A stretch of DNA of 64,000 nucleotides, taken from positions 682,001-746,000 of the forward strand of contig OZ025657.1 in assembly GCA_964019335.1 (NCBI GenBank). The letters are read 5' to 3'. The notes beneath the pieces are model-generated. The model was not told where the DNA came from, searched no databases, and saw only the letters and a list, made by a program, of their open reading frames with translations. Numbering within the stretch: the first letter of the stretch is position 1; every line of letters begins with the position of its first letter. A program made the position numbers and the translations under genes. This DNA comes from Diplonema japonicum (taxonomy: Eukaryota; Protista; Euglenozoa: Diplonemea). This document shows, one piece after another, positions 4,363-31,005 of the stretch.

Positions 4363-5402
4363 ATGCTGCCACACTAAGAATTCGTTTCTATTTATAGAGC
4401 GTCATGTGTACCTTATGCCTCATGCGACCTCGATACGAATATCTTTCCTTTCATTTTACTGCTGTGCTGTGGTTCTGTTTTTGGTCTATAATAGGGTTCT
4501 GCTGCAAGAATTAAAAAAAAGAAAAAGTAATAACGACACGTGCGTGATGTCGCGTGCGACTCTTCGATGAGGTTTCATTTCCTTTCCTTCTTCTCCTTCT
4601 TCTTCTTTTTTTTGGCGTTGTTCTTTGTTTTTGTTCAAACCCGCATTGTCCCCCCCCCTTTTTTTTGGTTTCTTAGTATTGCACGTATAGCGTTGCTCTT
4701 TGTTCTGAATCCCCCCTCCCCTTCCCTCCCCTCCCCTTCCCTCCCCTCCCCTGCCTGCCAACTTTGCACCTTTGTTATTGCTGCTGCCAGATGCCTTGCA
4801 CATGACACTATGCACGGCTCTCGAAGCAGTCTTCTTGGGACAACACGCACACATAAGAAAAGAAAAGAGGAAAAAAAAAAAAGAAAAAAAAAAAAGAGCT
4901 GCAACCACAAATATAAAGGTGTCACTCCTCGCAGATATAAAAAAAGGGGAAACAAAAAAGAGAGAAAATAATACGCAGAAGCTAGGAGGCAACAAAAAAA
5001 GAGGGGAAAAAAATAGAAGCGAGAAAAAAGGGGGAAACCAAGAAAGAAAGAAAAGAAAAAGCGACGGGCACCAAGTGCCCCGACCTCCCTGCGAATTACA
5101 TTCTAACGTCAGTGATAAAGAGGAACAAGAACTATGCATATATTTGTTCCTGTATAAGGAAGATGGTGCATGCTTATCAGAAGGAAGAATGTATGTGGCT
5201 GGTCCCCCCCCCTTTCCCCCTTTCCCTCCGCTCTTTTTTTTCTCTCAAAAAAAAGAGGAAGCAGCCTCGTGCGAGACGACATCACAGACAATATGATTCC
5301 CCACCACCTCACCCCTACTCCCCATTGCACTCTACACTTACGTGCGACTCTTCTACTTATTTATACTGCTCACTCAGGTTACACAAAAGTGCCTCACATG
5401 TC

Positions 5403-6317
5403 ATGCTACTCTTAACTAGCCTCTATCTAGTGGCTACGGCAGTAAGTATGTCTGTGGGGGGCTGCTCTGTGCTCCCCTTGGGAGACTCCATCACGCAAGG
5501 CATACGGCCTTATGACTCGTACCGACGATGGCTTGCGGAGCAAGGCGGGGACAAGATACAATACGTAGGGGGCATGACAGGGGGGTGTGTCAAGGGGAAC
5601 CCTTCGAAGCAGGAGGAAGGGGTGTGGAAGGCGCACCATGAAGGGCATTGCAACTGGGACTCATGGCGATTTGTAAACGAAGTGAAGGGCATCCTCGAAG
5701 GGGTCGCGCGGAACGGAACGGCTGTGAACGCAGTTCTGATGCACATCGGCACCAACGACATCTTCAATGTGGTGCGGAAGAAACGGTCGGTTAAAGCGCT
5801 CTCTGCAACAGCGGCCAACCTGCGGAGCATCATCACGGCTGTCCATGCCAAGTTCCCTAATGCTACCATCTTCCTGGCGCAGGTCGTGGCTACCACGTAC
5901 CCGGAGCCAACCAAGCATCTCAACAACCTCATCCGCACCCTTGCCACTGTCGACCCCCCTGGGGGCAAGGGTTTGCTGAATCTCGTAAGCTTCCCCCGCT
6001 TTGAGGTAAGCACCCACACCTTTGACACCACGCACCCTAACGAGGCTGGTGAGAGGTATATCGCAGACGTCTGGCACCGAGCTCTAACCGGCTTGGCGTG
6101 CATGAAGGAGCAAGGGACTGTTTTGAACCACACTACCGTCTCCCCCCCTGTTGTCCCTGCTCGTGCCGCCATTGCCGCAAAGGAAGAGGATTTCGTTCTC
6201 TCCCTTCCCGACCTTGTCGTCTTGTCTGCGCTCAGCACCACTCCTCTCGTCATCTGCGGCATGAGGATGGCGTTCAGGGCGCTTAGGTGGTACTTTGTCG
6301 GAAAATTGCTAAGCTAA
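5403..6317 (+). CDS. SGNH/GDSL hydrolase with signal peptide and C-terminal hydrophobic anchor
   Basis: Block I LPLGDSITQG, HEGH, block III HIGTND, block V DTTHPN; hydrophobic N- and C-termini. Confidence 0.85.
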   Translation: MLLLTSLYLVATAVSMSVGGCSVLPLGDSITQGIRPYDSYRRWLAEQGGDKIQYVGGMTGGCVKGNPSKQEEGVWKAHHEGHCNWDSWRFVNEVKGILEGVARNGTAVNAVLMHIGTNDIFNVVRKKRSVKALSATAANLRSIITAVHAKFPNATIFLAQVVATTYPEPTKHLNNLIRTLATVDPPGGKGLLNLVSFPRFEVSTHTFDTTHPNEAGERYIADVWHRALTGLACMKEQGTVLNHTTVSPPVVPARAAIAAKEEDFVLSLPDLVVLSALSTTPLVICGMRMAFRALRWYFVGKLLS

Positions 6318-6831
6318 AAACAATTTACACCCCCCCCCCCGTTTAAAGATGATACTAAACTTGTACTCTTTGTGCCGAGTAAGGATTTACTTTTCTGCAG
6401 AGGGGGGATTTTTTTTACTGCTGCCCTTTTTTTTCTTCTTCCTTCTCCTTTACTCGAGCGAAAAAAAAACCAATAACGACAAGTCTTACCATTATTTTTT
6501 CTCCCCCCCCGATTTTTAATGCTAAAAAAGAGAGAGGGGGGAAAAAAAGTATGCACTTCCGTGCATCTCTTTTTTTTCCCTCCCCTTTTCTTTTTCAACT
6601 AAGAATTTGTATAATTCCTACTCCTAAGTAATAAGAATAGGGAAAACCCCCGCATTCGCAAACTGCTGTCAACTGAACAGAAACTTTGTTTGGAAGAAGA
6701 AGAAGGGGAAAAAAAAAAAAAAAAAAGTGGGCAGCAGCTTCGGAACGCAGCAAGGTGAGTTAAGGGTTATAAGTCCCCCGTTATTATCTTACAAATAATG
6801 AGTCGTGCTTACACCCTTCCAGACACTTAAA

Positions 6832-7452
6832 ATGAAAAAGGTGGTGCTAGTACGCCATGCGGAGTCTGAGTTCAACGCAGCCCTAGGAGGAGATGAGTCG
6901 AAGAGGTTCACGGAGAAGATCCAAGGGCTAGTTGACTGCGGAATAACGGAGAATGGGATCAAAAAATGCAACGAATGCCAGGGGTGTGTGGAAGTTGACT
7001 TCTTGGTAGTGAGTCCCTTGAAGAGGGCTATGCAGACCGCTGTCCTCATGTTCCCTAGTGTGGTGGACGGATCCCTAAAACACGAGGTGCAGCCCCTGGC
7101 AGCAGAGCATCTGCTGGATATATGTGACGTGGGGTCTACAAGGGACGCGCTGCAATCTGTGTTCCCATGGGCTAACTTGAACCTGGTCCCTACCACCCCT
7201 TGGTGGCACGCTAAGATGAGCGCTGAACAGACTTGGCCCCTCCTCCCCAAGAACGATCCCTTTGAGCCAGAAGAAATCTTTGCGATGCGAATCACGCAGC
7301 TTAAGGAGTACCTCAAGTCCCTCCCCTACGAGAGGGTGGGCCTCGTGTGCCACTCTCATGTCATCTTCGAAATGACCAAACACGAGAAGGAAGGCGAGAC
7401 ATTCGGGAAGTGGGCTGACAACAACGAGTGTGTCGAGGTCTGCTTGGAGTGA
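6832..7452 (+). CDS. Histidine phosphatase / phosphoglycerate mutase family protein
   Basis: LVRHAES, VSPLKRAMQT, LAAE and LVCHS motifs. Confidence 0.85.
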   Translation: MKKVVLVRHAESEFNAALGGDESKRFTEKIQGLVDCGITENGIKKCNECQGCVEVDFLVVSPLKRAMQTAVLMFPSVVDGSLKHEVQPLAAEHLLDICDVGSTRDALQSVFPWANLNLVPTTPWWHAKMSAEQTWPLLPKNDPFEPEEIFAMRITQLKEYLKSLPYERVGLVCHSHVIFEMTKHEKEGETFGKWADNNECVEVCLE

Positions 7453-7639
7453 CCACGGCTCGAATAGTGTATTTCTTAAAAAATAATAGTGGCAACTTGT
7501 TGGTTAACCTTCGTCAGGTTCAACCGGCTTGTACAAAAGAACAATCGACTCCTAACCTTATGACACCCTCCCCCCGCGGGCGGCCAACGAATGCGCCGAC
7601 CTGTTCCACTATTGTGAGAAACCTCTTGATTTTTTTTTT

Positions 7640-7688
7640 AAACTGCATGAGCGCCGAATCGTTACCTGGGACGCCCCGGCTGGGGTTG
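7640..7688 (+). repeat. Dispersed repeat, copy 1 (matches 63949..64000)
   Basis: AAACTGCATGAGCGCCGAATC---GTTACCTGGGACGCCCCGGCTGGGGTTG; 3 mismatches and one 3-nt indel versus copy 2. Confidence 0.85.
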
Positions 7689-7912
7689 AACTGCACACCG
7701 CACGCATTAAGGACGCGGCGGCAACGCAGAAGAAGCCCCAACTCGATCGCGGTACCCCCCCCTGTAATCAAGTAGACAGTTCTTGTGCAGGGCGCCAACA
7801 CCGGCCTTTAGCTCTTATATATATATGTTTTTTTTTTTTTGAATACTGTTTTTTGTTTTTCTGTTCTTTTTTTTCTTGTTTCTTCCATCCCCTTCATGTT
7901 CCAGGCCCTGCG

Positions 7913-8473
7913 ATGGGGGCGATCCTGAGCCTGCTGGGGCTCGCGGGGTCGACGAAGAAAACCAACATCTTGATGGTAGGGCTGGATGCTGCAGGGAAGA
8001 CGACCATCCTGTACAAGCTGAAACTGGACCAAAAGGACGCGGAGGTGGTGACAACACCCACTGTAGGGTTTAACTTGGAAGTCATAAAGTACAGAAGCCT
8101 GACACTCATGATACGCGACGTGGGGGGGCAGGACAAGCTGCGCAGGTTGTGGAGGAACTACTACGAGGGGACCGATGCCGTGGTCTTCGTGGTGGACAGC
8201 AACGACGGTGACCGCATACCCCTTGCGAAGGAGGAGCTCCACAAGCTGATGAATGACGATTTTCTGAAGAACGCAGTTCTCCTCATCTATGCTAACAAGC
8301 AGGACCAGCCCAACGCTGTGTCACCCGCTACCCTCGCCACGCAACTGGACACCCCGTCCATCCAGTCCAAGGGGTTCAACGTCTTCATTCAACCCACCGT
8401 AGCACTCACCTGCGAAGGCATCTTCGAAGGCCTCGACTGGCTAGCCAACACTCTGAAAAAGCAGGCTCGTTAA
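7913..8473 (+). CDS. ADP-ribosylation factor (Arf/Arl) small GTPase
   Basis: MG myristoylation start, [32 protein letters not shown]. Confidence 0.93.
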
Positions 8474-8724
8474 TCTTTAATACATACAGAAAAGATAGGG
8501 GGTGGGGCAACTAAAGGGGAAATACATGTTTTAAACACAACAATAGCTTGAAAGGAGCCGATCCTTCTATCCTAGTGTTTTTTTTTCTTCTTTTTTTTTT
8601 TCTTCCCTTCTACTCATGTGGGATTTGTCGTTAAGCATCGTGTTTTTTTTTTTAATCCTTAACCATAATGTTTTCTTCTTCATTTTCAAACATTTATGTT
8701 CTCGCAGGCAGCCAAGCAATCACC

Positions 8725-11700
8725 ATGAGCGAAATATCTGCTCCGGGCTGGACAAGCTACCAACAGAAGTCACCTACCTTGCGTGTCCTGGTATGGATAT
8801 ATTGCGAACCTAAAGCATGTTCTACAGAGCGGAGCTACCGAGACACCCGCAAGATACATGGCAGCACCTATCCCCACGGCACTGGGCGCGAGTCAAGTCC
8901 CAACCATCCACTCTTTGGTATGACCTTGTAGTGTGGCATAAACTCTCACAGATGGGTGCTCAGCCTATTCAGCTGAACCTTCACGCCCAGAGGCCGATGC
9001 AGCCCACGACCAACCCATCCCTGTTTGGGAATGTTCTCGGTGATAAGCATGTATGCTGCGCTAACACAGACAATGCCACACAGCCCATTGAGAGCACTCA
9101 CAGAAACCTCTCACCAAGACGTCCCACCCACGTAGTGCCCTCGCCTAATGTGGAGCGGGAGCAGATGCGTGCGATGCGCGACGAAGCACGTGCTGAAGCA
9201 GACAACCTGCGTAAGATCCAGGCACTACAGGCACTGGAGGAACAGAGAAGACTGCAAGAAATGGAGAAGAGAATCCAACAGCTCGAACAGGCACCGGTTT
9301 CCCCCGAGCCAATGACACCATCGCGAGCTTCTCAAGTTTCCCTAGCGTCTCAGCCTGCGAAATCATCGCATGCTTCTCAGCCTGCATCTCAGGATCCAAC
9401 CTCCCAGCCTGCATCACAAATTCCGGTTTCTCAACCCACGTCACAAATCCAGTCGCAACCTGCATCAGTCCTCCTAGCCTCGCGACCGACATCGCAGGTG
9501 CAGGCCTCACAACCTGCATCACAGGCACAAGCCTCGCAACCTGCATCGCAGGTGCAGGCCTCACAACACACATCGCAAGTACAGGCCTCACAACCTGCAT
9601 CGCAAGTACAGGCCTCACAACCTGCATCGCAAGTACAGGCCTCGCAACCTGCATCACAGGTACAGACCTCGCAACCTGCATCGCAGGTGCAGGCCTCGCA
9701 ACCTGCATCACAGGTACAGACCTCGCAACCTGCATCACAGGTGCAGGCCTCGCAACACACATCGCAAGTACAGGCCTCGCAACCTGCATCACAGGTACAG
9801 GCCTCGCAACTTGCATCGCGGGCACAGACCTCGCAACCCGCGCAACCCACATCGCAGGCTCAGGTCTCACAGGCATCCCACTCTGTCTCACAAGTCTCGA
9901 TGTCACAGATATCGAAATCTGTCACACATGGTGTCCCCACGAACCCCCCGTCGGAGAAGATCTCCGCTCCGCCTGTAACGCCCGTCCAGGAACCGTCGCT
10001 GCCCCCCTCCAACCACCCATCTGTGAAGGCTATTGTCTCGGCGCCTGTCCCCTCCCAGGGTGACGGTGTCATCCAAGCACTTGTCCATCAGCTCCAAGAG
10101 CTAAAAGAAGGTCACAACAGCCTGCGATCGCATTGCACCCAACTCCACTCAGAACATGAGGCATTGGCATCGCAGCACGAAGACCTGAAGGAGCAGTGCA
10201 GAGAACTCCACACAGAGATCGTTGAGGTGACAGATGCTCATGAGAAGCTAAAGGCCCAATGCAATGAACTTCACACTGAGCACACGCAACTGGAGAACTC
10301 CCATGAGACACTCACCGATAATTGCAGAACTCTGCACACTGAGTACTCGCAGCTTGAACACAGTCATGACTTATTAAAAGAAGAGTGCAGAACTCTACAC
10401 ACGCAAGTGGAACAGCTTGAGGAAGGCCACACGCTTTTGAAGGAGGAATGCAGAAACCTTCACACGGAACTGACGGCGGTCGAAGAACGCCACGAAACAC
10501 TGAAGGAGGAGTGCAGGGGTCTCCATACTGAGCACACTGCTCTCGAGCAAGGCCACGAGTCCCTCAGAGAGGATTGTCGTGAGCTCCATACTACGACCTC
10601 AGGTCTGGAGGAGACGGTCCAAGGGCTCGTGGGGCTGCAGGAACAGTGCAGAGACCTCCACTCAGACCACATAGAATTGCGCTCCGATTATGAAGGGCTA
10701 AAGGAAGAATGTAGGGATCTCCACACTGAGATCTCCAGGGTCCAAACTGAAAACAACCAGGCAGAAATCGACAACATGAAGGAGGCAATGACGCAGCTTG
10801 CCGATGGCTACAACGCCATCCAGAGCGACTGCCAGTCCCTTGGGGACAACCAGAACATCCTGAAAACCAACGTGGACAATGTCACAGAGGCAACAACTGA
10901 ACTCAAGACCGACATGGACACACTTCGCGAGGAGTGCAGAGGTCTTCACACCGAGCACACCGAGTTTGCGAACGGCCACGAGATGCTGAGGGAACAGTGC
11001 AACGCTTTGCACACAGAGCACACCGAGCTGGAGCACAATCACGAGACTCTGCAGACGCAAGCTAGAGAATTACATACTCAGCTGAGCCAAGTGGAGACCG
11101 ACTTTGATGAACTCAAGGAACAGTGCAGAGGGCTTCATAGTGATCACACGGAACTAAGGACCGAGCACGAGAGCCTCAGGGAACAATGCACAGCACTACA
11201 CACTGATTGCCAGGACCTTGACACTCAGACAAAACAAACGACCGCAAAGATTGACGAAAGTGTGAAGGCTCTTGGGGACAAGATTGCTGGAACAGAGCAG
11301 GATTTGCTCAAACAGCTGGCGCAGCTTGCTGAAATCTTGAAGAGAAACGACTCCGGTGCTGTTATGACGTTAAGGATAGAGGCAGAGAGGAAGCTTGCTG
11401 AGCAGCAGAACAAGAGCGATGCACTGTCGACGCAGCTTGACGCCAGTCTCACAGGTCTTTCAGCAACAAACACAGCGCTGCAGCGCCTGAACGACCGTTT
11501 GAACTATGTTGATGAAACTCTCGACACCATGCGTAGTGACAAGCGGGCTCAGACTGCGATACCGCACATGCCACCCATGCACCCTCCTCCAGTTGGAAGT
11601 CCTCACAACGCTACGGTCCTCCCTCCGTCCTTCGGACGCTCTGTCTCCCCGACTAGGAGAGACCTTCCTCCAGCTGGAGCCACTCCTTCCATGTCACTGT

Positions 11701-16556: not shown

Positions 16557-19250
16557 ATGAACGATGTGGATCGCATCAAAGGAGCTATGAACATCTCTGC
16601 AAGCGAAGAGTTCGTGGGAGGAAAGTTATGGGGACAGAAACCCGTAAGCTGCCAATGCACCAGGAGAGGCGGAGCAAAACTGTGGCTGTTTAGGCACCAT
16701 ATGGGAATTGAGTTTGAGGACGGGCAACAGACTGAAGTCTTAGATTTTAAGAAGGTGAACCTGGAACCAAGCTGGAAGGCATATATCCAAAAAAGTTCTT
16801 TTTCCGTCCCACCTGTGTGCTACGCCGAGTTGCGTGTTGTTCCTTTAGACGTCTCTAAGCCGCCCACAACAGTTGTGTTTACAGACACTGCCAACGGTTG
16901 GGAGGCATCTCGCTCCATTCAGTTTGTATGGCAGTATAACAACAATGAGCTCTCGGAGACATCACACGTGTACCTGTCTTGCAACCGCTTCTCGGATGTC
17001 GTTGCTGTCGCCTCCAAGCTACCCATCGAAGAGCACTGCACTATGGCCACTCGTGACGGCGTCAAGGTTCCAGGCAAGTTGAAGCTCATCAACGGCGGTC
17101 TGCTGCAGTTCATATCTAGTTCGCAAAGACCGAACACCGACATGGAATGGTACTTAGAGGAGGTGCTCATGATACGCAGGAACAAGGGCATCGCGCAAGA
17201 GTCCATCGAGATGCGAGCCATCGTCACAGAGGGCGAACAAAGCAATCGGAAGAGAACAGAGCAAATATCTTTCAGCAACTTCAACGACATGACTTCACTG
17301 GAGGCAGCACTCGTCCGCGCGTGGTGCCTTGACTGCAACTCTGCAGTGAACTTCCGTCTCCGCAACGACATCGACAGCACTTACCTGCCGTCACCCCACA
17401 GGAAGAAGCGTACGTCGGTGGTTGCAAGCTCGATTAAAGAGCTGCCAGACAAAGTTTGCTTTCACGTTAGCGAAGTGATGCAGCTCCTGAGTACATTTCA
17501 GGCTATGGACAGAGACGGCGACGGTGTCATCTCGCGAGACGAATGGCTCAAATCACTTGGTTCTGTTTTCAGCAGGAGCAACATTGTCCCAGACGCCGTC
17601 TTCAGCGTCTTCGACACTGACAACGACAACACAGTGTCCTTCCCGGAGTTCCTGTTTGGATGCCGCATCCTGCACCTTGGCTCCAGCGAGGACAGGATCA
17701 AGTACCAGTACCGTATCTTCGACCCCTCTGGGAGCGGCTACATGACTCTCGAGCAGTTCGTCACCGTGGCGCGTGCCTTGGACGATGCTGTGGACCTCAC
17801 GATCCCCTACGGGGAGGACATCCCGACGTACTGTCGCAGGGTCTTCCAGCAGCTGGACACAAATCGCGAGAGCAGGATCGAGATCAATGAGTTCCACGAG
17901 GCCATTCACTCCGACGAGTCTTTCTCACATGTGAAGAAGGCGCTGTGCGGTTTATCACTCGCGAACTCAAAAGCCAACTCTGGTAAGACAACGACCGGGA
18001 AGCCTGTGTGGTTCGGGGACCCGCAGTGGCAGCAGTGCACCGCAATTCTTAAGGGCATCAAGCTATCTCAAGATTGCCGTGTGCAGGCAGCAAAAGTGAA
18101 AGGGAAGCCCCCCAGGAAGAGCGATATGTTCCAGGACGCCTTCACAGACAAAGCGCAATGGGTGCTTGAGTCAGGGGAGATAGTGAAGAACGGAAGGGCG
18201 AGGAGCGAGAGCCCCAGACGGCGCCCCGAACAATTCTTCACGGATTACTGTCCAAGGGTATTCTTGGCGTTGCAGGAAGCCTTCGGTGTGACCCCTGAGC
18301 AATACAAAGAGTCCTTGGGTATTGACCAACTGCGCAGCAGCATGCTTGTGGGGAGTCTGTCAAACCTGCTCAGTGTCTCAAGCTCAGGGCGCAGCGGGGC
18401 TTTCTTCTTCGCGTCCTACGACGGGCAGTTCATCCTAAAGACAATTGACAAATCTGAAGGGAAAATCTTGCGGCGGTTCCTCCCTGCATACTACAACCAC
18501 GTCATGAAGTACCCGAGCACACTGCTGACAAGGTACTTCGGGTTGCACGCGCTGGGGCATGGGGGTGACAAGATGTACTTCTTGGTGATGAACAACGTGA
18601 TGCAACCGCCCGAGAGGTTCCCCATACAGCTTCGCTACGACCTAAAGGGGAGCACTGTGAACAGAACCACACCACTAGACAGGCGGAAGAACGACGTGGC
18701 GCTGAAGGACTTGGATTTTAAAAGGAAACTGGAGATCGATTCAGAACTGAGACGGCTGCTAATGAACCAGATAAGGGCAGACTCGGGGCTGCTGGCAGGG
18801 GAGAAGCTGAACGATTACTCGTTGCTGATAGGGATCCACACGAACGAGTGTGTCATCGACGATGAGCCGTCGGAGGAGTTTGCACAAGAGCCGTTCTTCA
18901 GAAAATTTGAAGGTGGGATGCTGTCAGGTGATAAGAGAGAGATTTACTTTGTAGGGATTATAGATTTGCTGACATCTTTCGGTCTGCGAAAGAAAGGAGA
19001 GTACACGGTCAAGTCAGTGTGGTACCGTACTGGGAAGGTGTCGTGCGTCCCGCCCGACGAATACCAGGAGCGTTTCGTCCAATATGTGGAGTCCATATTC
19101 CCTGTCCCCACTGCAGTGACCTACCACGACCCCTCCCCCTCACCGCCCTTCCCAATCAATATGCGAAGCCCTTCCATAGCTAACTACGCCTTCCCTACAA
19201 CCAGCATAGACATCATCTCTCCTACCTCACCTACAGCCAAGCGGGTCTGA
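16557..19250 (+). CDS. Phosphatidylinositol phosphate kinase (PIP5K family) with EF-hands
   Basis: EF-hand loops DRDGDGVISRDE, DTDNDNTVSFPE, DPSGSGYMTLEQ, DTNRESRIEINE; PIPK motifs SGRSGAFFF, FILKTI, LVMNNV, YDLKGS, LKDLDF, DYSLLIG, GIIDLL. Confidence 0.92.
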   Translation: MNDVDRIKGAMNISASEEFVGGKLWGQKPVSCQCTRRGGAKLWLFRHHMGIEFEDGQQTEVLDFKKVNLEPSWKAYIQKSSFSVPPVCYAELRVVPLDVSKPPTTVVFTDTANGWEASRSIQFVWQYNNNELSETSHVYLSCNRFSDVVAVASKLPIEEHCTMATRDGVKVPGKLKLINGGLLQFISSSQRPNTDMEWYLEEVLMIRRNKGIAQESIEMRAIVTEGEQSNRKRTEQISFSNFNDMTSLEAALVRAWCLDCNSAVNFRLRNDIDSTYLPSPHRKKRTSVVASSIKELPDKVCFHVSEVMQLLSTFQAMDRDGDGVISRDEWLKSLGSVFSRSNIVPDAVFSVFDTDNDNTVSFPEFLFGCRILHLGSSEDRIKYQYRIFDPSGSGYMTLEQFVTVARALDDAVDLTIPYGEDIPTYCRRVFQQLDTNRESRIEINEFHEAIHSDESFSHVKKALCGLSLANSKANSGKTTTGKPVWFGDPQWQQCTAILKGIKLSQDCRVQAAKVKGKPPRKSDMFQDAFTDKAQWVLESGEIVKNGRARSESPRRRPEQFFTDYCPRVFLALQEAFGVTPEQYKESLGIDQLRSSMLVGSLSNLLSVSSSGRSGAFFFASYDGQFILKTIDKSEGKILRRFLPAYYNHVMKYPSTLLTRYFGLHALGHGGDKMYFLVMNNVMQPPERFPIQLRYDLKGSTVNRTTPLDRRKNDVALKDLDFKRKLEIDSELRRLLMNQIRADSGLLAGEKLNDYSLLIGIHTNECVIDDEPSEEFAQEPFFRKFEGGMLSGDKREIYFVGIIDLLTSFGLRKKGEYTVKSVWYRTGKVSCVPPDEYQERFVQYVESIFPVPTAVTYHDPSPSPPFPINMRSPSIANYAFPTTSIDIISPTSPTAKRV

Positions 19251-20532: not shown

Positions 20533-22746
20533 ATGCCTCAGAAAGGCAGCGACGAGGGGAGGAAGGACACTGTGGCATGGAAGGGAAATGACGAGAGCAG
20601 CACGTGTGAGGACATCGGGTGCCAGAAGACCTTCTCGTTGATGAACAGACGGCACCACTGCAGGAACTGCGGAGGTCTCTTCTGTTCGGGTTGCAGCAAC
20701 AACAAGATTATCATGCCGAAGGTTGGGAATGGCCGGCACAGGGCCTGCAACAAGTGCTACATGAAGTACACTGCCAACTCAGACATCCCTGCAGAGAAGG
20801 ATACCTATTTTGCACTCCTAGTCTCGCGTCTTGTGAGATCACACGAAGAGCTCGTTGAAGCAGGCTTCAGAGTACATTACATACAACCCTTCGCTAAAAG
20901 GTCCACTCAATGGTGTGTCGTGACCCATCCTTCACGGCCTGAAGCCTGCTTTGTGTCCTTCGCCTCTTCCAAGCCTGTATTCGAATGCCTGTTTGAAAAC
21001 CAATCCCTTGACATCGAGACCATCAACGGCAGCAGGGTCCACTCAGGCATTTACACCGCCGTCCAGAACGAGATCAAAGTCTTGCTCTCTGTCCTTTTGA
21101 AGCAGATCCCCGACAGGCAAAACGTTATCTTCTCCGGCTTCTCTCTTGGCGGCGCTATGGCCACTGTTGCTATGATAGAGGTGCTTGCTTCGGGCTTCAG
21201 AAGGCGTGGCACGCAAGCTATCACCTTTGGTGCACCAGCCGTGCTTCACTCTGAAGACGAGGAAGGGGGTAGCAGGGTAAAGCTGCCTAGGAACGTTATA
21301 AAACCGAAAATCACAAATTTTGTTTGCAACTTCGATATTGTGCCCCGCCTCCTTTCCTTCACACCAGGGAACCTCACGTCCTTCCTCCACCACGCAAAGC
21401 AGGCAGACCCCGATGCCGCAGCCGCCTCGTCGACAGGCTTCCTGAAGCTTCTCACAAACACGACACCCCTGCACACCACCTACACACCTGTGGGGACACA
21501 TGTCCTGTTTCAAGTGATCACAGACCTCCCCTCCACCCCCTACCGTCTGTCTGCAGGGGTTATCGAACCCGACCCCAAAGAGGCCCCCGCCAACACCCTC
21601 GCCGCGGAGCTTTTGAACTACATCCCCTTCGACGGCGTGCTGCGCGGGAGGTTTTTCCCTGAGTTTGTAGTAAAACAGAGCATCGAAGCACACACGATGG
21701 AGATGTACTTTCCAGCCATAAGGCACCTGTGCAAGACAGGGTGGGGCTGCATACCGATTAACACGAGTGATCCCACCACAACTGTGCCACAGAGCCCCCC
21801 CAGGAGTGGCGGCGGGCTGTACAACACTTCGAAGCGAGTGCTGACAGTGTTGGGGGCAAACGAGATGGAGATCAGGCCAGGTGGGAACGAGATGCTACCT
21901 GAGGGGGAAAACAAAATAATTGTGGAAGGTGGCTCTGTGAGCAGCTGCCTTGTGAACATGGAGAACGTAGACGAGCTGACGGAGGTCGAGGTGGGCGTGC
22001 GGTTGCTCCAGAACATCATCGACAAGAACGAGGCACCGCAGTTGGAGGTGGTGGAGGGCGACCCGTCGCTGTCCCCTGCCGTCATCGACGGGGGTTCCGC
22101 GTACCCAGTGGCCGTGTGTCTGACACCGTCACAGCTCCTCCTCATCCCCCACAACCCTGGGCGGCCTGCGGTGGTGCACTCCGTTTCTGACATCGACATC
22201 ATCTCGACACCAATGCAGACTGACGTGGAGTGGCCGACAGGGGTGGGGTTCCTGGGGTGGGTCCTTATAAGGGTGTGCCAGAAGTACTTGAAAGTTGCTT
22301 TTAGGGACACAGACACGGCTGTGATGCTGTACAAACTGTTGAAGAACAAGTGCACGGGTGACATGGATGACCCGGAGGTCCTGACCCTCATCGAGGATGA
22401 CGGGCCGCCATCACGGGTGAGCCAGCACTCGACTTCCACTGCAGGAGACTCATGCGAGGGGGCGGTAACAGTTGCAAATGATGAAACTGGTTCTACCTGG
22501 GTGTTCCAGGTGTCCCCTGTGCTGGGATGCGTACTCTTCGAGCAGGGCACTGACCTCGCCCTCCTGTCGGCACTGTATGATGAAGAGGACAATACCTCAC
22601 GAGCTCCCTCGTACCTAGCCAGCGACAGGTGGCTTGCCTTGCACATGCTAGCACGGAAGATGGGCCGTGTCGACGATACCCCTGTCTGGAGGGTCGAGTT
22701 CTCAGACCCTGTCTTCCCGCCATACTGCGAGCCTCTGGGCAAGTAG
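20533..22746 (+). CDS. FYVE zinc finger plus class 3 lipase protein
   Basis: WxxxD...RRHHCRNCGGLFC..C...RACNKC (FYVE); VHSG, GFSLGG nucleophile elbow, TFGAP, DIVPRL and AH (lipase_3). Confidence 0.88.
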   Translation: MPQKGSDEGRKDTVAWKGNDESSTCEDIGCQKTFSLMNRRHHCRNCGGLFCSGCSNNKIIMPKVGNGRHRACNKCYMKYTANSDIPAEKDTYFALLVSRLVRSHEELVEAGFRVHYIQPFAKRSTQWCVVTHPSRPEACFVSFASSKPVFECLFENQSLDIETINGSRVHSGIYTAVQNEIKVLLSVLLKQIPDRQNVIFSGFSLGGAMATVAMIEVLASGFRRRGTQAITFGAPAVLHSEDEEGGSRVKLPRNVIKPKITNFVCNFDIVPRLLSFTPGNLTSFLHHAKQADPDAAAASSTGFLKLLTNTTPLHTTYTPVGTHVLFQVITDLPSTPYRLSAGVIEPDPKEAPANTLAAELLNYIPFDGVLRGRFFPEFVVKQSIEAHTMEMYFPAIRHLCKTGWGCIPINTSDPTTTVPQSPPRSGGGLYNTSKRVLTVLGANEMEIRPGGNEMLPEGENKIIVEGGSVSSCLVNMENVDELTEVEVGVRLLQNIIDKNEAPQLEVVEGDPSLSPAVIDGGSAYPVAVCLTPSQLLLIPHNPGRPAVVHSVSDIDIISTPMQTDVEWPTGVGFLGWVLIRVCQKYLKVAFRDTDTAVMLYKLLKNKCTGDMDDPEVLTLIEDDGPPSRVSQHSTSTAGDSCEGAVTVANDETGSTWVFQVSPVLGCVLFEQGTDLALLSALYDEEDNTSRAPSYLASDRWLALHMLARKMGRVDDTPVWRVEFSDPVFPPYCEPLGK

Positions 22747-23904: not shown

Positions 23905-26900
23905 ATGTCTCTTTATAGACACAACACGAAAGAGTTGCTACGCGCTGAGGTGGAAAGACACTGTGGGCATGTGGCATCGGAGTACAAACTATTCAGAGGA
24001 TGGCAGAGTGAGTGGCGAAAGGCGGCAATAGTAGTCATCGAGAACACCCTCTTTAAACTCTTGATGGGCGGTGTTGAGGTGCTTGCTGCGTTGCTCTGTG
24101 TGTGGGAGGGCGTGCACATTGGTGTAGTAATCTCTGTGAGCGGGTTTCTCTTTATAGATATGGCTATGGTGGGCTGTGCAGTCGGATATCCCGAATACCT
24201 GAGATCGGCCCGCCATGTGGTAGAGTGCTCGTCTACATTGTGTATGGCAATGTACTTGCTTCTTGCCGCTCAAGGGACCACCGTGTCCTCCCTTCTCCTT
24301 CCCCTTCCTCTTAGACTGCTTAAACAGTTACGGCCATTTGTTCTTACAGATGCTTTATACACCGCTTCTCCTTACTGGGGAGGAACTCTCGCCACTGCCC
24401 TTTCTCTCACTTGGTTTTTCATCCTTCTTGGTCTTTTTATATGGGCCGATGGTTTGCACTACAGGTGTATTAATCCTGCCGGAGATTTTGAAGCGCAAGA
24501 CGATCCGTGTGGAGACAAGGCGTGCGGTTTGAACTACACATGCCAGTTCAGCCAGGCCACGTCGAGCCATACAGGGCTTGACAACTTCGGTGATGGGCTG
24601 CTTTATGTGCTTCAAGTCGCCACCTTCGACGACTGGGCACAGCTGCTTTTGAAGCTTGAGCATCGATCGGGGCACCTTGTCATCTTCTTTTTCATATCGA
24701 TCAACCTCTTCATCTCGTTCTTCGGGACGGGTATTATGTTGTCTGTCATCGCAAGGCTTTTAACCACCCCTACCCCGCGGCCACTTCCCCCTATCCCACA
24801 CCTCACACCCGCTGTGTTCCTTGCCTCTGTGCATCTCCATCCCATTGCTATAATTGCCCACCCCTACATTCTATGGGAACTGCCCCCAATGCAGCCGCCT
24901 TTCGTCGATCATCTTCGTATGGTTGCGGTGTTTCCTGACACAAAGGCCCTCCAGCACATGGAGGACCAGCTGCATTACAACCAACTGCTTGCACAACGAA
25001 AGATACCCGTTTCCCCGAAAGCACCACCCGCCCCCGCCCCACGCACCTCAGAAACCCCACCCGTCTTGAAGAAGATATTGACCCACCCTGCGTTCACAAT
25101 CACTATGTGGTGCTCAACTATTGTGAACAGCATTGTTCTGTGGCTATCAAGGATCATCCCCGACGACGCTGTCAGATACGTTAGTTACGTGTGCTCTGCC
25201 GTGTTCTTGGTCGAGGCGTGCCTCATTGTCGCTGTGCTCCGCAGGGACATGACTGGTTTCGATACTTTGCGCTGCGTGCTGTCCGCGGTAAGTCTATGGT
25301 ACTGCATTGCGGGGACGGGGCCCTGTTTTAATGCTCTGCGATTGCTCGGGTTGTTGCAGTACATGCAATACTCCGAAGTAGCCCCAATACAGCGTGTTGC
25401 CTGTGCCATCGTACACTCCGTGAATCCCGTTATGGCCTCGTTTGGGTTTTGCTCTCTCCTCTGGTACTGGGTGACAGTGATCGGCATGACCACTCTGGAC
25501 CCGCTGCATGACGAGAGGTGGGATAGGAATGTGTTTGATGGTTTCTGGGAGAGCCTCCTGACCGCCTACGGCTTGTTCACGATGGAGAAGTGGGCTTTCC
25601 TCACAAGAAGAGCCATGCAAACAGAGTCGCAATGGGCTGTGATGTATTTCATTTTTGTGGTGTTGTTGTCATTCGGGATGCATACCCTGCTCCGTGCCAT
25701 CCTCCTGTCTTCGTACAAACAGGTGGCATCTCTCCAGACGCTCCCCCCTGTCGTAAGGGAGCCCGTCGTGCAACCCACTGAACCCATCTGTGACGAGGAG
25801 TCGGAAATGTCGTTCCTGACACGTCCACCGACACCGGCAAGCGACTGCATCTCGTTCTACGCCCCCGGTCCTGTGGGCAATAAGGGTTGGGTGCGCTTCC
25901 AACTCAGGTGCGGTGTTATTAATATCAAAGTTAAGAACGACGTGCCTCTTGATGCGAAGCGTGTCAGCATCCTGCCACCCAATGAGTGTGAGCTGCCTGC
26001 ACTTTACGTGGCAACCCACGAAGGCACCTCCTTCAAGGCCTATATCCCCGACAACTTGCTCGCACGTGTTGCAGTCGAGCTGCGTGCCACACTCGGCGAC
26101 CAGCGCACCATATCCAAGATTTCACACAACATCGACGAGTGGCGCAGCGAACACTCCACCTACATCGTGGGTGAGGAGTATTGGCTCAGCACCGTCGAGG
26201 AACCGTCTTTCTGCGGGAAGTACCACCCGACAGCGTCCGGCAAGTGGGAAAACAGGGAGACTGATGCTGTACTGACCTGTAGTCAGCACCGCTGGACTGT
26301 GAAAGTTGACTCCAAATCTGTAAGCAGTGACGGGTTCACATGGGTAAAGAATAAAGATCAGTTTCCCATGCACATGGTGACATATACTGGCGGCAATAGA
26401 GTGTTCACTGTCAATGCCGATGACCCACTAGGGTTGCTGGCACGCCGTTATGTCGTTTACGAGGATGTCTTGTGGCGCTCCCTGCAGCACTACATCGACA
26501 CGAGCGGTGTCCATAGGCTCGAGGATCTTGTGGAGTATGTCTGCAAGGTGGACATCCCCTTCCGCAACGCACTCCTTGCAACGGGCACGAAACAAATCTT
26601 ATACATGTCAGACCCGTACTGGGGAGGTAAAGGGAACGGATTGAACGAGTATGGGAAGATATTGATGAGGGTGAGAAACCATGTGCCCAAGGGGGAATGC
26701 GAACAAATGTTCTCTGAGATTGGGTTGAATGCTGTGCTGGCTGAAGAGCTGCATCTTCGTGACTTTGCACCAGACACGCTGAAGTTATTCAAGAAACATC
26801 TGAAAGGCACTAAAAGCAAGCTGCTGGATCTGGAATACAAGCCAGAGCAGTTAGAAGAACTGGACAACGAAGATGACGAGTCCTTGCCGTCCCTTGGCTA

Positions 26901-29277
26901 CAACGATCTCGTGGAGTATGCTAGGATGTTCGCGAGGCTACAGAAGACAAGTTCGAAATTTCTCCCCGCCTCAGAACTGGAAGCGAAGACGTACGAGCCG
27001 AAACAGCCGCCCCCAGTTCTGATCACACACTTCGCGTTGGGGTGCAGACAGCTTGGGTGCATAGGCTTTTCCACAACAAACAGTCTCAGAACTGTTGCAG
27101 GCATCATCAGGAAACACTTTATGTACAGCACAATCCTCACACTGGTAATCATCGGGCAGACAGTAGCCATCTGGTTCGATGTGCCGAACTATGATGAAAG
27201 CGCAGCAGCGCAAGACGTCAACCGTGTCTGCGATATTGTCATCACGCTCGTCTTCATGATGGAGTCTCTACTCGGGGTGATTCAGATGGGGCTGGTGAGG
27301 AACGAAAACGCGTATCTACGAAACACATGGGACTTGCTGATGGCGTGGGGGGCTTTATTTGCCTTCCTCGGGCTCTTCGTTCCTGTTGTCAAACCTTTAA
27401 GAGGCGTGGTTCTGTTCCGCTTCATGCACAAGGACCGCTTCCTGTCACGCGTGACTAAAAGGCTGGTCGGGTGCGTGGGAGATGTCATCTCAGTGATGTT
27501 GGCTGCAGCAGCGTTTGGTATGCTGTGGGGCATCCTCGGGATACAGATCCTCAACGAGAAGGATGAATCCATGGGCGATATCTATGCTACCTTGTGGGAC
27601 ATCACGCTCTCCGATGGGTGGTTGGACACCTTGTACAACTCGCCTGGTGGCATTGTCATTCCCTACTACTGTGTCTACGTCTTTGTGGTCAGACTGTTGT
27701 TGTTCCTCTTCCCGGCGATTGTGCTGTGCCGTGACAACAACCGTGTTGGCTACACCGACCTGCAACTCAGGTGGATGGAGTCATTGCAATATTTAAAGGA
27801 CTTCAGTGTACTCCGTCCGCCTCCGCAGGAGCCGCAAGGGGGGTCGAAGTATTTTTACTACCTTGTCGCCAATCACAAGCTGACCACGCCATCGGTGAAC
27901 ACGTGCATCGCCTGTGTGTGCATAGTCTTGTCTACTCATGTGGTCAACAAGCCGACGCAGCTGTCAATCGTGCACCGCAACATAGCTATAGCTCTTATCG
28001 TAAGTCTGACGCTGGAAGTTTGCGTCAAAGTCCTAGGATGGGGCCCCAAGCACTATGTCAGGGACAACTGGCGCCGTGTTGATTTGCTGACTGTGGTGGT
28101 AGCATGGGTGGGCGTTGCCTTCGGAAATGCTGAGATCTTCGCTGCCTTTACTATGTCGCGGCTGTTTCGGTTGTACATATTGTTGGAAGACATGAAGTGG
28201 TGGTTGGAGCTGGCGGCCTGTCTTCGATCGTTTCTCGTTTTTGCAAAGCATGTTGTGCATGTGCTGGCATTCTTGTTGTTGTTCCTCTTCCTTACGGGGG
28301 GCATGGGCATCCAACTCTTCGGTGCCTCGCCCAACGTCGCCGAAAACAGCACTGGCCTCAACCCGTACATGAACTTTGAGAACTACCCCAACGCCATGAT
28401 GCTCTCCTTCCGCATTGCTGTCGGTGAGGGGCTCACTTCTATCATCTCAGACCTTGGCACGTCAGAGGCTCGCATCTATACCACTGTGGTGCGTGTAGCA
28501 GGTCTGGTTGTCGTTGGGCTTTTTGTAGCACAGGCTATGGAGGCTATGAGCTACGCACTCAGGGTGATGGCAACCCTCCGTTTAGTTTCCCTCTTGGACC
28601 CTTTCATCAAGAAATGGAAGACAAAGGATAAGTCGGGTCTCGGCAACCTGTGTGCACATGATGTCATAGACATTTTGTGTTCCCTTCCCTTGCCTCTATG
28701 GGACAAGGACAAGTCAGTTATGCAGCAGCTGAAAATGTTACCCATTCCAGTCACAAACCCAAGGGACCCTGACAACTACGGCCAGTCGAGGGCTAGGTAC
28801 ATGGACGCAGTGTCGGCACTGTCAATGAAGATGATGGGTTTGGACATTCAAGCGGGATTGGAGATCTCTGAGTCGAAAGAGTGCGTGTGGCCTCTGAGAG
28901 ACTGCAGACATGAATGGATGGGGCTACATCATTATCAAGCCGTGATCATTATAGAGAGGTTTGTCCTGAAGGGCGTGAGAAACAGAAAAAGCTCGGTTTA
29001 CGTATCTGTTGTTAAGGGACTGCAGTCACGCGTGCTGGGTTTGCAAAAAAGGGTTGCGCACTCAGAAGCCCTCATGGAGAAGTACCACGCGGACCGTGCA
29101 GTGGTGGTAGGAGAGTACCAGCACCTTGTGGCCTATGCAACTGACACTCTGCACTCCATTCCACCTTCTTCATCGTCCGAGCTCACTTCTGACGAAGTCA
29201 CACTCCCCATCACGTCGACCCCTTCATCTAACAGGTCGTCGCACCATAACACCGATCGCTCACTGTTCATAACCTAA
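23905..29277 (+). CDS. Four-repeat voltage-gated-type (Cav/Nav superfamily) cation channel alpha subunit with a NADAR-like insert
   Basis: Four TM repeats with pore loops ATFDDW, FTMEKW, TLSDGW, AVGEGL; YLRNTWD and DNWRRVD S2-S3 motifs; GIQLFG and NFENY in repeat IV; C-terminal EF- and IQ-like segment. Confidence 0.85.
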   Translation: MSLYRHNTKELLRAEVERHCGHVASEYKLFRGWQSEWRKAAIVVIENTLFKLLMGGVEVLAALLCVWEGVHIGVVISVSGFLFIDMAMVGCAVGYPEYLRSARHVVECSSTLCMAMYLLLAAQGTTVSSLLLPLPLRLLKQLRPFVLTDALYTASPYWGGTLATALSLTWFFILLGLFIWADGLHYRCINPAGDFEAQDDPCGDKACGLNYTCQFSQATSSHTGLDNFGDGLLYVLQVATFDDWAQLLLKLEHRSGHLVIFFFISINLFISFFGTGIMLSVIARLLTTPTPRPLPPIPHLTPAVFLASVHLHPIAIIAHPYILWELPPMQPPFVDHLRMVAVFPDTKALQHMEDQLHYNQLLAQRKIPVSPKAPPAPAPRTSETPPVLKKILTHPAFTITMWCSTIVNSIVLWLSRIIPDDAVRYVSYVCSAVFLVEACLIVAVLRRDMTGFDTLRCVLSAVSLWYCIAGTGPCFNALRLLGLLQYMQYSEVAPIQRVACAIVHSVNPVMASFGFCSLLWYWVTVIGMTTLDPLHDERWDRNVFDGFWESLLTAYGLFTMEKWAFLTRRAMQTESQWAVMYFIFVVLLSFGMHTLLRAILLSSYKQVASLQTLPPVVREPVVQPTEPICDEESEMSFLTRPPTPASDCISFYAPGPVGNKGWVRFQLRCGVINIKVKNDVPLDAKRVSILPPNECELPALYVATHEGTSFKAYIPDNLLARVAVELRATLGDQRTISKISHNIDEWRSEHSTYIVGEEYWLSTVEEPSFCGKYHPTASGKWENRETDAVLTCSQHRWTVKVDSKSVSSDGFTWVKNKDQFPMHMVTYTGGNRVFTVNADDPLGLLARRYVVYEDVLWRSLQHYIDTSGVHRLEDLVEYVCKVDIPFRNALLATGTKQILYMSDPYWGGKGNGLNEYGKILMRVRNHVPKGECEQMFSEIGLNAVLAEELHLRDFAPDTLKLFKKHLKGTKSKLLDLEYKPEQLEELDNEDDESLPSLGYNDLVEYARMFARLQKTSSKFLPASELEAKTYEPKQPPPVLITHFALGCRQLGCIGFSTTNSLRTVAGIIRKHFMYSTILTLVIIGQTVAIWFDVPNYDESAAAQDVNRVCDIVITLVFMMESLLGVIQMGLVRNENAYLRNTWDLLMAWGALFAFLGLFVPVVKPLRGVVLFRFMHKDRFLSRVTKRLVGCVGDVISVMLAAAAFGMLWGILGIQILNEKDESMGDIYATLWDITLSDGWLDTLYNSPGGIVIPYYCVYVFVVRLLLFLFPAIVLCRDNNRVGYTDLQLRWMESLQYLKDFSVLRPPPQEPQGGSKYFYYLVANHKLTTPSVNTCIACVCIVLSTHVVNKPTQLSIVHRNIAIALIVSLTLEVCVKVLGWGPKHYVRDNWRRVDLLTVVVAWVGVAFGNAEIFAAFTMSRLFRLYILLEDMKWWLELAACLRSFLVFAKHVVHVLAFLLLFLFLTGGMGIQLFGASPNVAENSTGLNPYMNFENYPNAMMLSFRIAVGEGLTSIISDLGTSEARIYTTVVRVAGLVVVGLFVAQAMEAMSYALRVMATLRLVSLLDPFIKKWKTKDKSGLGNLCAHDVIDILCSLPLPLWDKDKSVMQQLKMLPIPVTNPRDPDNYGQSRARYMDAVSALSMKMMGLDIQAGLEISESKECVWPLRDCRHEWMGLHHYQAVIIIERFVLKGVRNRKSSVYVSVVKGLQSRVLGLQKRVAHSEALMEKYHADRAVVVGEYQHLVAYATDTLHSIPPSSSSELTSDEVTLPITSTPSSNRSSHHNTDRSLFIT
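26398..26685 (+). other. NADAR/YbiA-like domain (truncated) in the channel II-III linker
   Basis: WRSLQHY resembles W-x-T-S-E-H-Y, and LLATGTKQILYMSDPYWGGKGNGLNEYGKILMRVR matches the NADAR C-terminal signature LLxTG...D-x-x-WG...G-x-N-x-LG-x-x-LM-x-x-R. Confidence 0.75.
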
Positions 29278-29376: not shown

Positions 29377-31005
29377 ATGGCCAGAATAGGTGGCATGGCG
29401 GACATCAACGCAAGGTTGATGAAGAAAAACTCGAAAGGCAAGCAGCATGCTAGGCCTGTGGAGAGGCTTGAAGACGAATATGACCTGAAAATTGAACCAG
29501 AGGACCAGGAACCTGGTGTGCTGGGTAAGGGAACGTACGGCATTGTGAGGAGGTACGAGAAGAAGGACCTGGACCACCTGAAGCATGTGCCATCCGGGCC
29601 TGTTGCGATTAAGGAGATCGACAAGATGCGTGCTTCGTCGAACACGAAGACGCTGAAGCACATCATGGTGGAGCTTGTGGTGCTGAAGCAGCTCAACCAC
29701 CCCAACGTCATCAAGCTGTACGACGTGGTGCACACAGAGGACAAGATCTACATGGTCATGGAGCTCTGCAGCGGTGGCGAGCTTTACCACTTCATTGCCA
29801 CGAACCGCGTGCTCCCTCCCGACACCGCCGCCATCATCCTCAAGCAGATCCTCATTGTGCTGAAGTACATACACAGCGAGCACATTGTGCACAGAGATAT
29901 CAAACCAGAAAACATCCTCATAGACAAGAACGACTTCCACATCAAGCTCATCGACTTCGGGCTTGCAAAGTACTATGGCCCTGCAACGAATGTGGATTTC
30001 CCCCAGTCGCCCTCACCTAACAACCCCCAGCACTTCATGTGCGGTGATGCGGTGCCGCCTAGCCCGCTCATTGCCAACACACCCTGTGGGACTGATCTCT
30101 ACCTGGCGCTTGAGTCCATCTGCGGTATCTTAGAAGGCCAGGTGGGCAAGAGGCCGTGGATGTCTACGAAAAGCAAGCTGCCTAAAGTGGACGTGTACGG
30201 CGCGGTATGGCAATGGTTTAAGAATTATTATTTCATCGCACGCAGGGTGTCATTGCCTACGCCATGCTGACAGGAAAGCTACCGTACCGAAGTGCTTACC
30301 GCCAAGTCCGAAGAACGCCACAGGAGCGCGAGCGCAGGTTAGAGGACTTGAAGGGAAAGATGAGAGATGGTGTGCAGTTCCCGGCCACTGCCCAGAACCT
30401 TCCTCTCGAGGCACTAGAGGTATGCTGTTGTGGCACATGAACCATCACAGTGCGTGCGTGAGCTGATGCAGAACAACTGCCAAGAGCGTCCCTCAGCAGA
30501 GCAGGCGATCATGCTTGACTGGTTGAGAGACGTGAGAACCCCTTCTAGGGGCGAGCCCGACGTGACTGTCATCGAGGTGAAGCAGGTATTGAATTGACAC
30601 GTGACGACACACTCAACAGGTGAAGCCCGTGGATAAGGCAAGCTTTGTGATGTCTGGGCCGCCCATTAAAAAGAAGGGCAAGCAGCCTGAGAAGGCACCG
30701 CTCCCGGATCTCACGAAGCAAGCTGTAGGGTATGAGGCAGGATGTAAAAGAAAACTTGACAGAGTTGAAGAAAAGAAGGTGATTGCTGGTGCTGGTGCAG
30801 AGAAGAAAGGTATGCTCGAAAAAATAATATGAGCGACATGTACACACACACAGAAACGCCAATTGAGTTCGTGGAGGAGGAGAAAGAAGAGGAGAAGGCC
30901 CCGGGCACTGCCGATCCTGCCAAGTTCAAGGACGGGTGGGCTGAGCTTATGCGGAATGTGAGAGGCGAAGAAGACGATGACTGTGAAGAGAAGAACTCGG
31001 CGTAA
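29377..31005 (+). CDS. Ser/Thr protein kinase, CAMK-like
   Basis: [24 protein letters not shown]. Introns 30205..30245, 30420..30450, 30586..30619, 30730..30762 and 30810..30853 restore [19 protein letters not shown] and RPSAEQA; stop TAA at 31003-31005. Confidence 0.88.

Follow-up and report, generated by a model that had tools for sequence, protein, structure and literature searches.

A four-repeat Ca-type channel gene from Diplonema japonicum with a partial NADAR-derived segment in its II-III loop

Cav1, Cav2, and Cav3 channels and the Cav-like channels of protist flagella and cilia share four Ion_trans repeats, T-x-[E/D]-x-W pore motifs, an all-acidic pore, and a long cytoplasmic loop between repeats II and III (i.e., the II-III loop). 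In animal Cav channels, this loop is a docking platform (e.g., the synprint site and RyR coupling). In TRPM2, an ion channel is joined to a catalytically inactive domain that stems from an enzyme of ADP-ribose metabolism; this NUDT9-H domain folds completely, keeps its ligand pocket intact, and is located at the C terminus of a tetrameric TRP channel. The ADP-ribose-removing enzymes of the NADAR/YbiA family (Pfam PF08719; structures 2B3W, 8BAU, and 8BAT) are free-standing or form tandem arrays, and the physiological roles of eukaryotic NADARs have been stated to be unclear (PMC11125620). Here, we describe a gene for a four-repeat channel with a NADAR-derived segment in its II-III loop, encoded in a 64,000-nucleotide stretch of the genome of Diplonema japonicum (GenBank assembly GCA_964019335.1, contig OZ025657.1). 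This stretch (G000:C10:682001-746000) is hereafter called the window, and the genome (G000) comprises 62.5 Mb in 132 contigs. As far as the literature searched shows, this is the first four-repeat Ca-type channel with such a segment; no paper joining the terms "NADAR domain" and "ion channel" was found there, in line with the initial annotation of the window, which had been made from the sequence alone and knew of no described Cav-NADAR fusion.

The NADAR-derived segment and its homology

The channel is encoded by an open reading frame (ORF) at positions 23905 to 29277 (plus strand), which contains 1,790 codons plus a stop and is open without interruption. Pfam Ion_trans matched four stretches of the protein (E = 5.4e-60), and hydropathy analysis placed its transmembrane (TM) segments in four clusters (approximately amino acids [aa] 40 to 280, 393 to 600, 1069 to 1280, and 1325 to 1552), such that the Pfam and hydropathy results agree on four six-TM repeats in one chain, the architecture of the Cav/Nav/NALCN superfamily. 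The closest solved proteins detected by phmmer were Cav2.3, Cav2.2, Cav1.x, and Cav3.x, with Nav ranking behind. The II-III loop (aa 601 to 1068, about 470 residues; 25705 to 27108, plus strand) lacks a hydrophobic segment and, by analogy with the even-TM topology of the superfamily, is taken to be cytoplasmic. Searches of Pfam, protein, genome, and atlas data revealed no homologs of the loop apart from the NADAR-derived segment, which spans aa 833 to 927.

This segment is composed of two blocks and a short bridge. The N-block (aa 833 to 869, including DVLWRSLQHYID; 26401 to 26511, plus strand) was delineated by local alignment to a NADAR paralog encoded on contig C8 of the same genome. The bridge (16 aa, HRLEDLVEYVCKVDIP; 26512 to 26559, plus strand) replaces the central NADAR part in a multiple alignment of 78 sequences (alignment A2, i.e., the channel and 77 NADARs, of which 71 are bacterial and 6 are encoded in the same genome). 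The C-block (aa 886 to 927, FRNALLATGTKQILYMSDPYWGGKGNGLNEYGKILMRVRNHV; 26560 to 26685, plus strand) was delineated by profile, hhalign, and database matches. The string in which the initial annotation had recognized NADAR, WRSLQHY...LLATGTKQILYMSDPYWGGKGNGLNEYGKILMRVR, corresponds to aa 857 to 924 (nucleotides [nt] 26473 to 26676). The segment has in common with the NADAR/YbiA proteins the C-terminal 42 residues and an N-terminal W-x-S-x-x-H-Y motif in the right order. The C-block retains the motifs LLxTG, DxxWG, and GxNxxGxxLMxxR (with D903, W906, G912, N914, G917, L920, and R924), and the N-block motif is collinear with it in the MAFFT and hidden Markov model (HMM) alignments.

Several comparisons place the homology of the C-block to NADAR on secure ground. 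An hhalign comparison between the loop and six NADAR domains encoded in the same genome gave a probability of 96.4% and an E value of 1.2e-9 over 43 columns. A phmmer search with aa 650 to 999 against 1.84 billion representative proteins yielded nine matches at an E value of <=1e-3; all nine are NADAR proteins according to Pfam, and all match at the C-block (whole-protein E values are boosted by tandem NADAR domains, and single domains score about 18 to 20 bits). The best of these matches was about 51% over 40 aa. A profile built from the 77 NADARs without the channel scored 27.8 bits for aa 886 to 926, and the channel keeps all 10 of the columns that are invariant in A2 (i.e., H862, Y863, L890, D903, W906, G912, N914, G917, L920, and R924). 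By BLASTP, the C-block is 45% identical to the C8 paralog (L007, 359 aa) over 42 aa (E = 7e-8), and DVLWRSLQHYID lies in register with DVVWPTMLHYIE of this paralog. The local alignment of the N-block to the paralog scored 43, compared with 23.9 +/- 4.4 for shuffled sequences (3 of 2,000 shuffles reached this score; z of about 4.3), while the N-block alone collected only 0.6 to 2.4 profile bits. The Pfam NADAR profile (163 positions; gathering cut-off, 35.1 bits) matched aa 886 to 926 below its cut-off (E = 8e-3 to 2e-4), at 16.8 bits with the whole protein and at 20 to 22 bits with the excised segment, and the match is confined to profile positions 107 to 161. The similarity is significant and family specific and shows common descent, and the homology of the segment to NADAR is genuine, if partial, which upholds the assignment of the quoted string to this family and its expected profile match, the latter with a sub-cut-off Pfam score.

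A protein-atlas search with aa 780 to 940 returned sub-threshold leads (0.87), of which those at ranks 2 and 3 are NADAR clusters, while the same search with aa 655 to 845 found nothing. We also considered a second degenerate NADAR copy at aa 650 to 830, and rejected it given that the profiles have no match there.

Structure prediction gave results of limited value. AlphaFold2 with the single sequence of aa 650 to 999 yielded a mean predicted local distance difference test (pLDDT) score of 35.5, which is unusable, and AlphaFold2 with alignment A2 yielded a mean pLDDT of 66 (70 to 86 in the C-block). In a Foldseek search with the latter model, YbiA and 8BAU ranked first with nonsignificant E values (0.065 and 0.96); in a VIA-align search of 48,161 chains, 2B3W, 8BAU, and 8BAT ranked first (Z = 6.0, 5.9, and 4.7, versus 4.1 for the next row). 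The structural comparison that the initial annotation had proposed as a check yields NADAR matches by rank, without significance in Foldseek. Since A2 consists of NADARs, the NADAR likeness of the model represents consistency rather than independent proof, and a complete YbiA-like fold of about 140 to 160 residues was not found.

The two blocks are separated by 16 residues, compared with about 55 in NADARs, and about 43 consensus positions are gone in A2, close to the 40 or so central residues that had been thought missing. HMM positions 40/50 to 94 have no counterpart in the channel, and the lost part comprises the G-R-x-R ... R-x-D-W ... A-K-F helices (i.e., "...GRDRkRPLR.DW...vM..A..aKF..."). 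DNA contigs from other studies are identical to the window over 25738 to 27685, 26344 to 26675, and 26100 to 26471; because these independent contigs show no difference at all, the central deletion is not an assembly error.

Loss of ligand and catalytic positions

A study of the NADAR of Phytophthora (P. nicotianae; PMC11543638) attributes ADP-ribose contacts or catalysis to 13 residues: E43, K50, K75, G78, R79, V81, Y84, D86, W89, R93, E125, D130, and W133. In this study, W133 is described as hydrogen bonding the pyrophosphate directly and D130 as doing so through water; the function of the Escherichia coli C7 enzyme is abolished by E88Q (equivalent to E43Q), possibly through hindered recognition of the distal ribose, and by changes at K95 (equivalent to K50). 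We compared the channel with the NADAR-ADP-ribose structure from Phytophthora at these 13 positions by aligning 8BAU to the A2 profile (the chain numbering is offset by two).

Eleven of the 13 positions are substituted or deleted in the channel. E43 corresponds to Q861 (EHY is now QHY), K50 to G868, and E125 to Y900 (LvE is now ILY), while K75, G78, R79, V81, Y84, D86, W89, and R93 all fall within the deleted segment; with them has gone the entire wall around the adenine and the proximal ribose, together with most of the wall around the pyrophosphate. The sole survivors are D130 (D903) and W133 (W906). Given these 11 losses, we infer that the segment is not a hydrolase and would be unable to hydrolyze ADP-ribose, and that the canonical pocket is gone, such that ADP-ribose binding there is unlikely, although a ligand could conceivably bind in a noncanonical way. 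The suspicion that the domain is catalytically dead, based on the EHY-to-QHY and LVE-to-ILY changes (which both hold), is strengthened by the replacement of K50 and the deletion of K75 to R93. The further proposal, a sensor of NAD, ADP-ribose, or a related metabolite as in TRPM2, is left unsupported by the loss of these same contact and catalytic positions. The channel does resemble TRPM2 in carrying a noncatalytic domain from an enzyme family of ADP-ribose metabolism. The pocket residues are, however, mostly deleted here instead of forming an intact pocket, and the remnant is embedded between repeats II and III of a four-repeat channel. It likewise differs from the NADAR/YbiA proteins in the missing central residues, in the substitutions at E43 (Q), K50 (G), and E125 (Y), in its sub-cut-off score, and in its position inside a channel loop.

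The channel locus and other NADAR proteins of the genome

The four repeats of the channel (whole ORF, 23905 to 29277; Ion_trans x4) all lie on the plus strand, as do all large ORFs in the window. Repeat I (aa ~40 to 280; 24022 to 24744) carries the pore motif TFDDW (aa 240 to 244; nt 24622 to 24636) with the filter residue D242, as judged from hydropathy, the motif, and alignment to Cav1.3. Repeat II (aa ~393 to 600; 25081 to 25704) carries TMEKW (aa 559 to 563; nt 25579 to 25593) with E561, on the basis of alignment, hydropathy, and the motif. Repeat III (aa ~1069 to 1280; 27109 to 27744) carries LSDGW (aa 1235 to 1239; nt 27607 to 27621), in which the filter residue D1237 is assigned by motif only. 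Repeat IV (aa ~1325 to 1552; 27877 to 28560) carries VGEGL (aa 1506 to 1510; nt 28420 to 28434) with E1508, on the basis of alignment to Cav2.3 and hydropathy. In the phmmer alignments, TFDDW aligns on TMEGW of Cav1.3, TMEKW on TGEDW, and VGEGL on TGEDW and TGEAW of Cav2.3, with the usual pore tryptophan replaced by leucine; D242, E561, and E1508 align to the filter glutamates of Cav. The C-terminal tail (aa 1553 to 1790; 28561 to 29274, plus strand) contains no recognized domain, and a Pfam scan of 28600 to 29274 gave no match.

Every repeat has an acidic filter residue, and the D/E/D/E filter and pore coordinates read in the initial annotation are correct, as is its Ca-type assignment. On the basis of this all-acidic filter, we predict that the channel is probably Ca2+ permeable. 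It differs from Cav channels in the filter composition (EEEE or EEDD in Cav), in the leucine of the repeat IV pore, in the NADAR remnant of its II-III loop, and in its sparse S4 charges: the S4 of repeat I (LPLRLLKQLR) has three charges in an R/K-x-x triplet pattern according to a pattern scan, while one arginine in repeat II and two or three charges in repeats III and IV were read by eye. Identity to animal Cav channels is only 19 to 26%, and the Cav-specific Pfam families found in the vertebrate matches (PF16905, PF08763, and PF16885) have no match in the channel.

A six-frame search of the genome with repeats III and IV gave 71 matches distributed over roughly 25 to 30 long open frames, which indicates a strongly expanded family of four-repeat channels, with at least about 25 genes. 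The closest other four-repeat channel is 27 to 29% identical to the one described here, and searches with repeats III and IV and with the loop found no channel paralog in the genome that carries this II-III loop. Four short contigs from sequencing run X11 (organism B) match 27440 to 29101 with differences of 1 to 2% from repeats III and IV and leave the loop uncovered; they come from a differently labeled organism, either a very close relative or another strain. One contig from run X5 tracks the gene to 27685 and then reads CGGGTTTGCGGGTTTGCGG, the reverse complement of an 8-base (GCAAACCC)n repeat. No (GCAAACCC)n-type repeat was found at 27685 within the window itself, and the junction may be chimeric through assembly or may represent a rare variant that arose by breakage and healing.

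Upstream of the channel gene lie a FYVE and Lipase_3 protein (20533 to 22746, plus strand) and a PIP5K that carries a pair of EF-hands (16557 to 19250, plus strand). When ten window proteins were looked up by exact sequence in a public collection, the PIP5K alone was present, with EukProt as its source. A protein kinase ORF (29377 to 30270) begins 100 nt past the channel stop.

NADAR occurs at 14 places in the genome (adjacent stretches of one contig were joined only for locating long open frames), and, as in the channel, several of these copies form part of large proteins of membranes or transport. A 3,403-aa frame on contig C86 (L011/L023; G000:C86:338961-349169, plus strand) combines NADAR, many ankyrin repeats, Polycystin, and a PKD/Ion_trans channel. 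Its NADAR is full-length (73.3 bits, Pfam) with the EHY glutamate and the lysine intact, neither of which is present in the channel remnant; we consider this fusion, judged from its sequence, a better candidate for a nucleotide-regulated channel than the gene in the window. On contig C98 (L010/L025; G000:C98:313765-318921, minus strand), an Na+/H+ exchanger (NHE) is followed by a full NADAR (72.5 bits) and then by a second one, the C-terminal block of which resumes in another frame past a run of lysine codons (KKKKKK); the change of frame reflects a frameshift or else an error in assembling the homopolymer. The C86 domain and the main C98 domain are both full-length and past the Pfam cut-off, whereas the channel remnant is neither.

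Other copies are partial. A 3,994-aa VPS13-like frame with NHL repeats on contig C43 (L012/L024; G000:C43:115381-127362, minus strand) contains an internally deleted NADAR, in which HMM positions 2 to 29 score 3.9 bits, positions 30 to 74 (EHY and the central part) are absent, and positions 75 to 140 score 39.8 bits. It resembles the channel remnant in its succession of N-strands, internal deletion, and C-block. A 1,604-aa protein on contig C24 (L009; ORF 4539 to 9353, minus strand) carries Lipase_3 and matches NADAR twice, once with AHY for EHY (the first match) and once with the C-terminal half only (the second); a database protein (P0020) likewise has a partial, C-terminal NADAR match. The free-standing 359-aa NADAR on contig C8 (L007/L026; ORF L026:2904-3983, minus strand) is closest to the channel remnant and has neither of the acidic residues (LHY instead of EHY and LVY instead of LvE); therefore, a noncatalytic NADAR subfamily seems to exist in this organism, as far as sequence can tell. 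A neighbor of this gene carries SHIPPO (sperm-tail PG-rich) repeats. The ART family (PF01129) has at least 45 matches over the cut-off in the genome, mostly inside long open frames, and is strongly expanded.

Interpretation of the loop segment

The reading that the resemblance to NADAR arose by chance could appeal to the Pfam score under the gathering cut-off and to the modest bit scores of the single-domain matches behind the lifted whole-protein E values. It is close to refuted by the convergence of all nine database matches on one family, the hhalign E value, the retention of every invariant NADAR position, and the presence of a collinear N-motif. Almost as improbable is the removal of the segment from the mature protein as an in-frame intron: no run on record as RNA is among the sequencing runs matching the locus, which would leave room for it, but the reading frame stays open over its full 5.4 kb and holds all four repeats, the NADAR blocks share the frame of the channel, and no joint appears in any of the DNA contigs. 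A TRPM2-like ligand sensor that would couple ADP-ribose, NAD, or a related metabolite to the gating of Ca2+ entry is quite unlikely, if less so. The NADAR origin itself speaks for it, as do the survival of D903 and W906 (the equivalents of D130 and W133, which contact the pyrophosphate according to PMC11543638) and the full-length NADARs on a TRPP-type channel and an NHE in a genome with many ARTs, which make a coupling between ADP-ribose and ion transport a plausible theme. Against it stand the 11 contact or catalytic positions that are substituted or deleted, including K75 to R93, the inactivation of the E. coli C7 enzyme by the equivalent E-to-Q change reported there, and the lack of a confident fold in the AlphaFold2 models.

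The choice lies mainly between a relic and a retained module, and the conservation of the two blocks bears on it. The C-block of the channel is on average 42% identical to those of the 71 bacterial NADARs (30 to 51% for the six full-length paralogs of the same genome), and it is 31 to 48% identical to each of these paralogs, which are 24 to 38% identical among themselves. The N-block, at 20%, is the lowest of all (23 to 68% for the paralogs). Elsewhere in the genome, nothing matches the loop better than at 45% protein identity, and no close copy of the C-block exists there; therefore, the segment is not a recent copy. An old yet consensus-like C-block beside a decayed N-block suggests that the former was selectively retained, and the similar remnant in the VPS13-like protein on C43 points the same way. 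A neutral relic (i.e., a NADAR shuffled into the loop that lost its function, decays, and has no role in the channel) remains a minority possibility of real weight. It would account for the sub-cut-off score, the internal deletion of about 43 aa with the loss of catalytic residues, and the absence of the segment from every channel paralog searched in the genome, and the other partial NADARs (C43, C98, and the second C24 domain) fit frequent shuffling and decay. It accounts poorly for the 10 retained family-invariant positions, for a C-block nearer to each paralog than the paralogs are to one another, and for a segment that is still consensus-like although neither the genome, as DNA or protein, nor 1.84 billion proteins contain a close source for it.

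We give about an even chance to the alternative that the segment is a noncatalytic structural or partner-docking module. Under this proposal, the II-III loop would have taken in a NADAR domain long ago, which would later have been reduced to a pseudo-domain with a weak N-piece, a 16-residue bridge, and a well-kept C-block, the last probably kept by selection in a structural or docking role. Components of the expanded ADP-ribosylation machinery of the organism would be candidate docking partners. Several points weigh against this proposal. The docking role is drawn by analogy from animal Cav channels and their II-III loops and is not a result, and the structure model is weak and depends on the NADAR alignment. 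No ortholog was found with the loop, the whole protein, or aa 826 to 1560 as the query; the homolog searches returned only distant vertebrate and ciliate Cav matches (19 to 26% identity), scanning metagenome loci with the loop yielded no relative, and an exact look-up of the channel in a collection of 15 billion proteins did not find it. The sequencing runs matching the locus provide DNA contigs; none is on record as RNA, and one (X11) is RNA by a guess only. Finally, the consensus likeness of the C-block could partly reflect detection bias, since only NADAR-like remnants get noticed.

On its own and near the family consensus, the C-block survives in two or more large proteins of the genome that are unrelated to each other, and it may be a separable module. 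We also entertain, as a speculation with a low chance of being right, that it is an autonomous noncatalytic mini-module (NADAR-C) that was repeatedly built into large membrane and trafficking proteins of diplonemid-type protists and that ties a Ca2+-type channel to the expanded ADP-ribosylation system. If so, NADAR-C might dock an ART or a full NADAR, or use a novel mode to bind a small ribose-phosphate ligand, and it would be part of a wider, lineage-specific linkage between ADP-ribose chemistry and ion transport, beside the TRPP-NADAR and NHE-NADAR fusions.

The message of this analysis is mostly corrective. The observation of a NADAR-derived segment in a Ca-type channel is confirmed and its interpretation is partly supported, in that the NADAR origin and the dead catalysis hold and an ADP-ribose sensor is not borne out: the domain is genuine yet gutted, and the model of a TRPM2-like, ADP-ribose-gated Ca2+ channel is unsupported for this gene. 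At the same time, D. japonicum attaches NADAR to several ion-transport proteins and encodes dozens of ART domains. The fusions of full-length NADARs to a TRPP-type channel and to an NHE are therefore better ground than the gene in the window for exploring ADP-ribose control of ion flux in protists.

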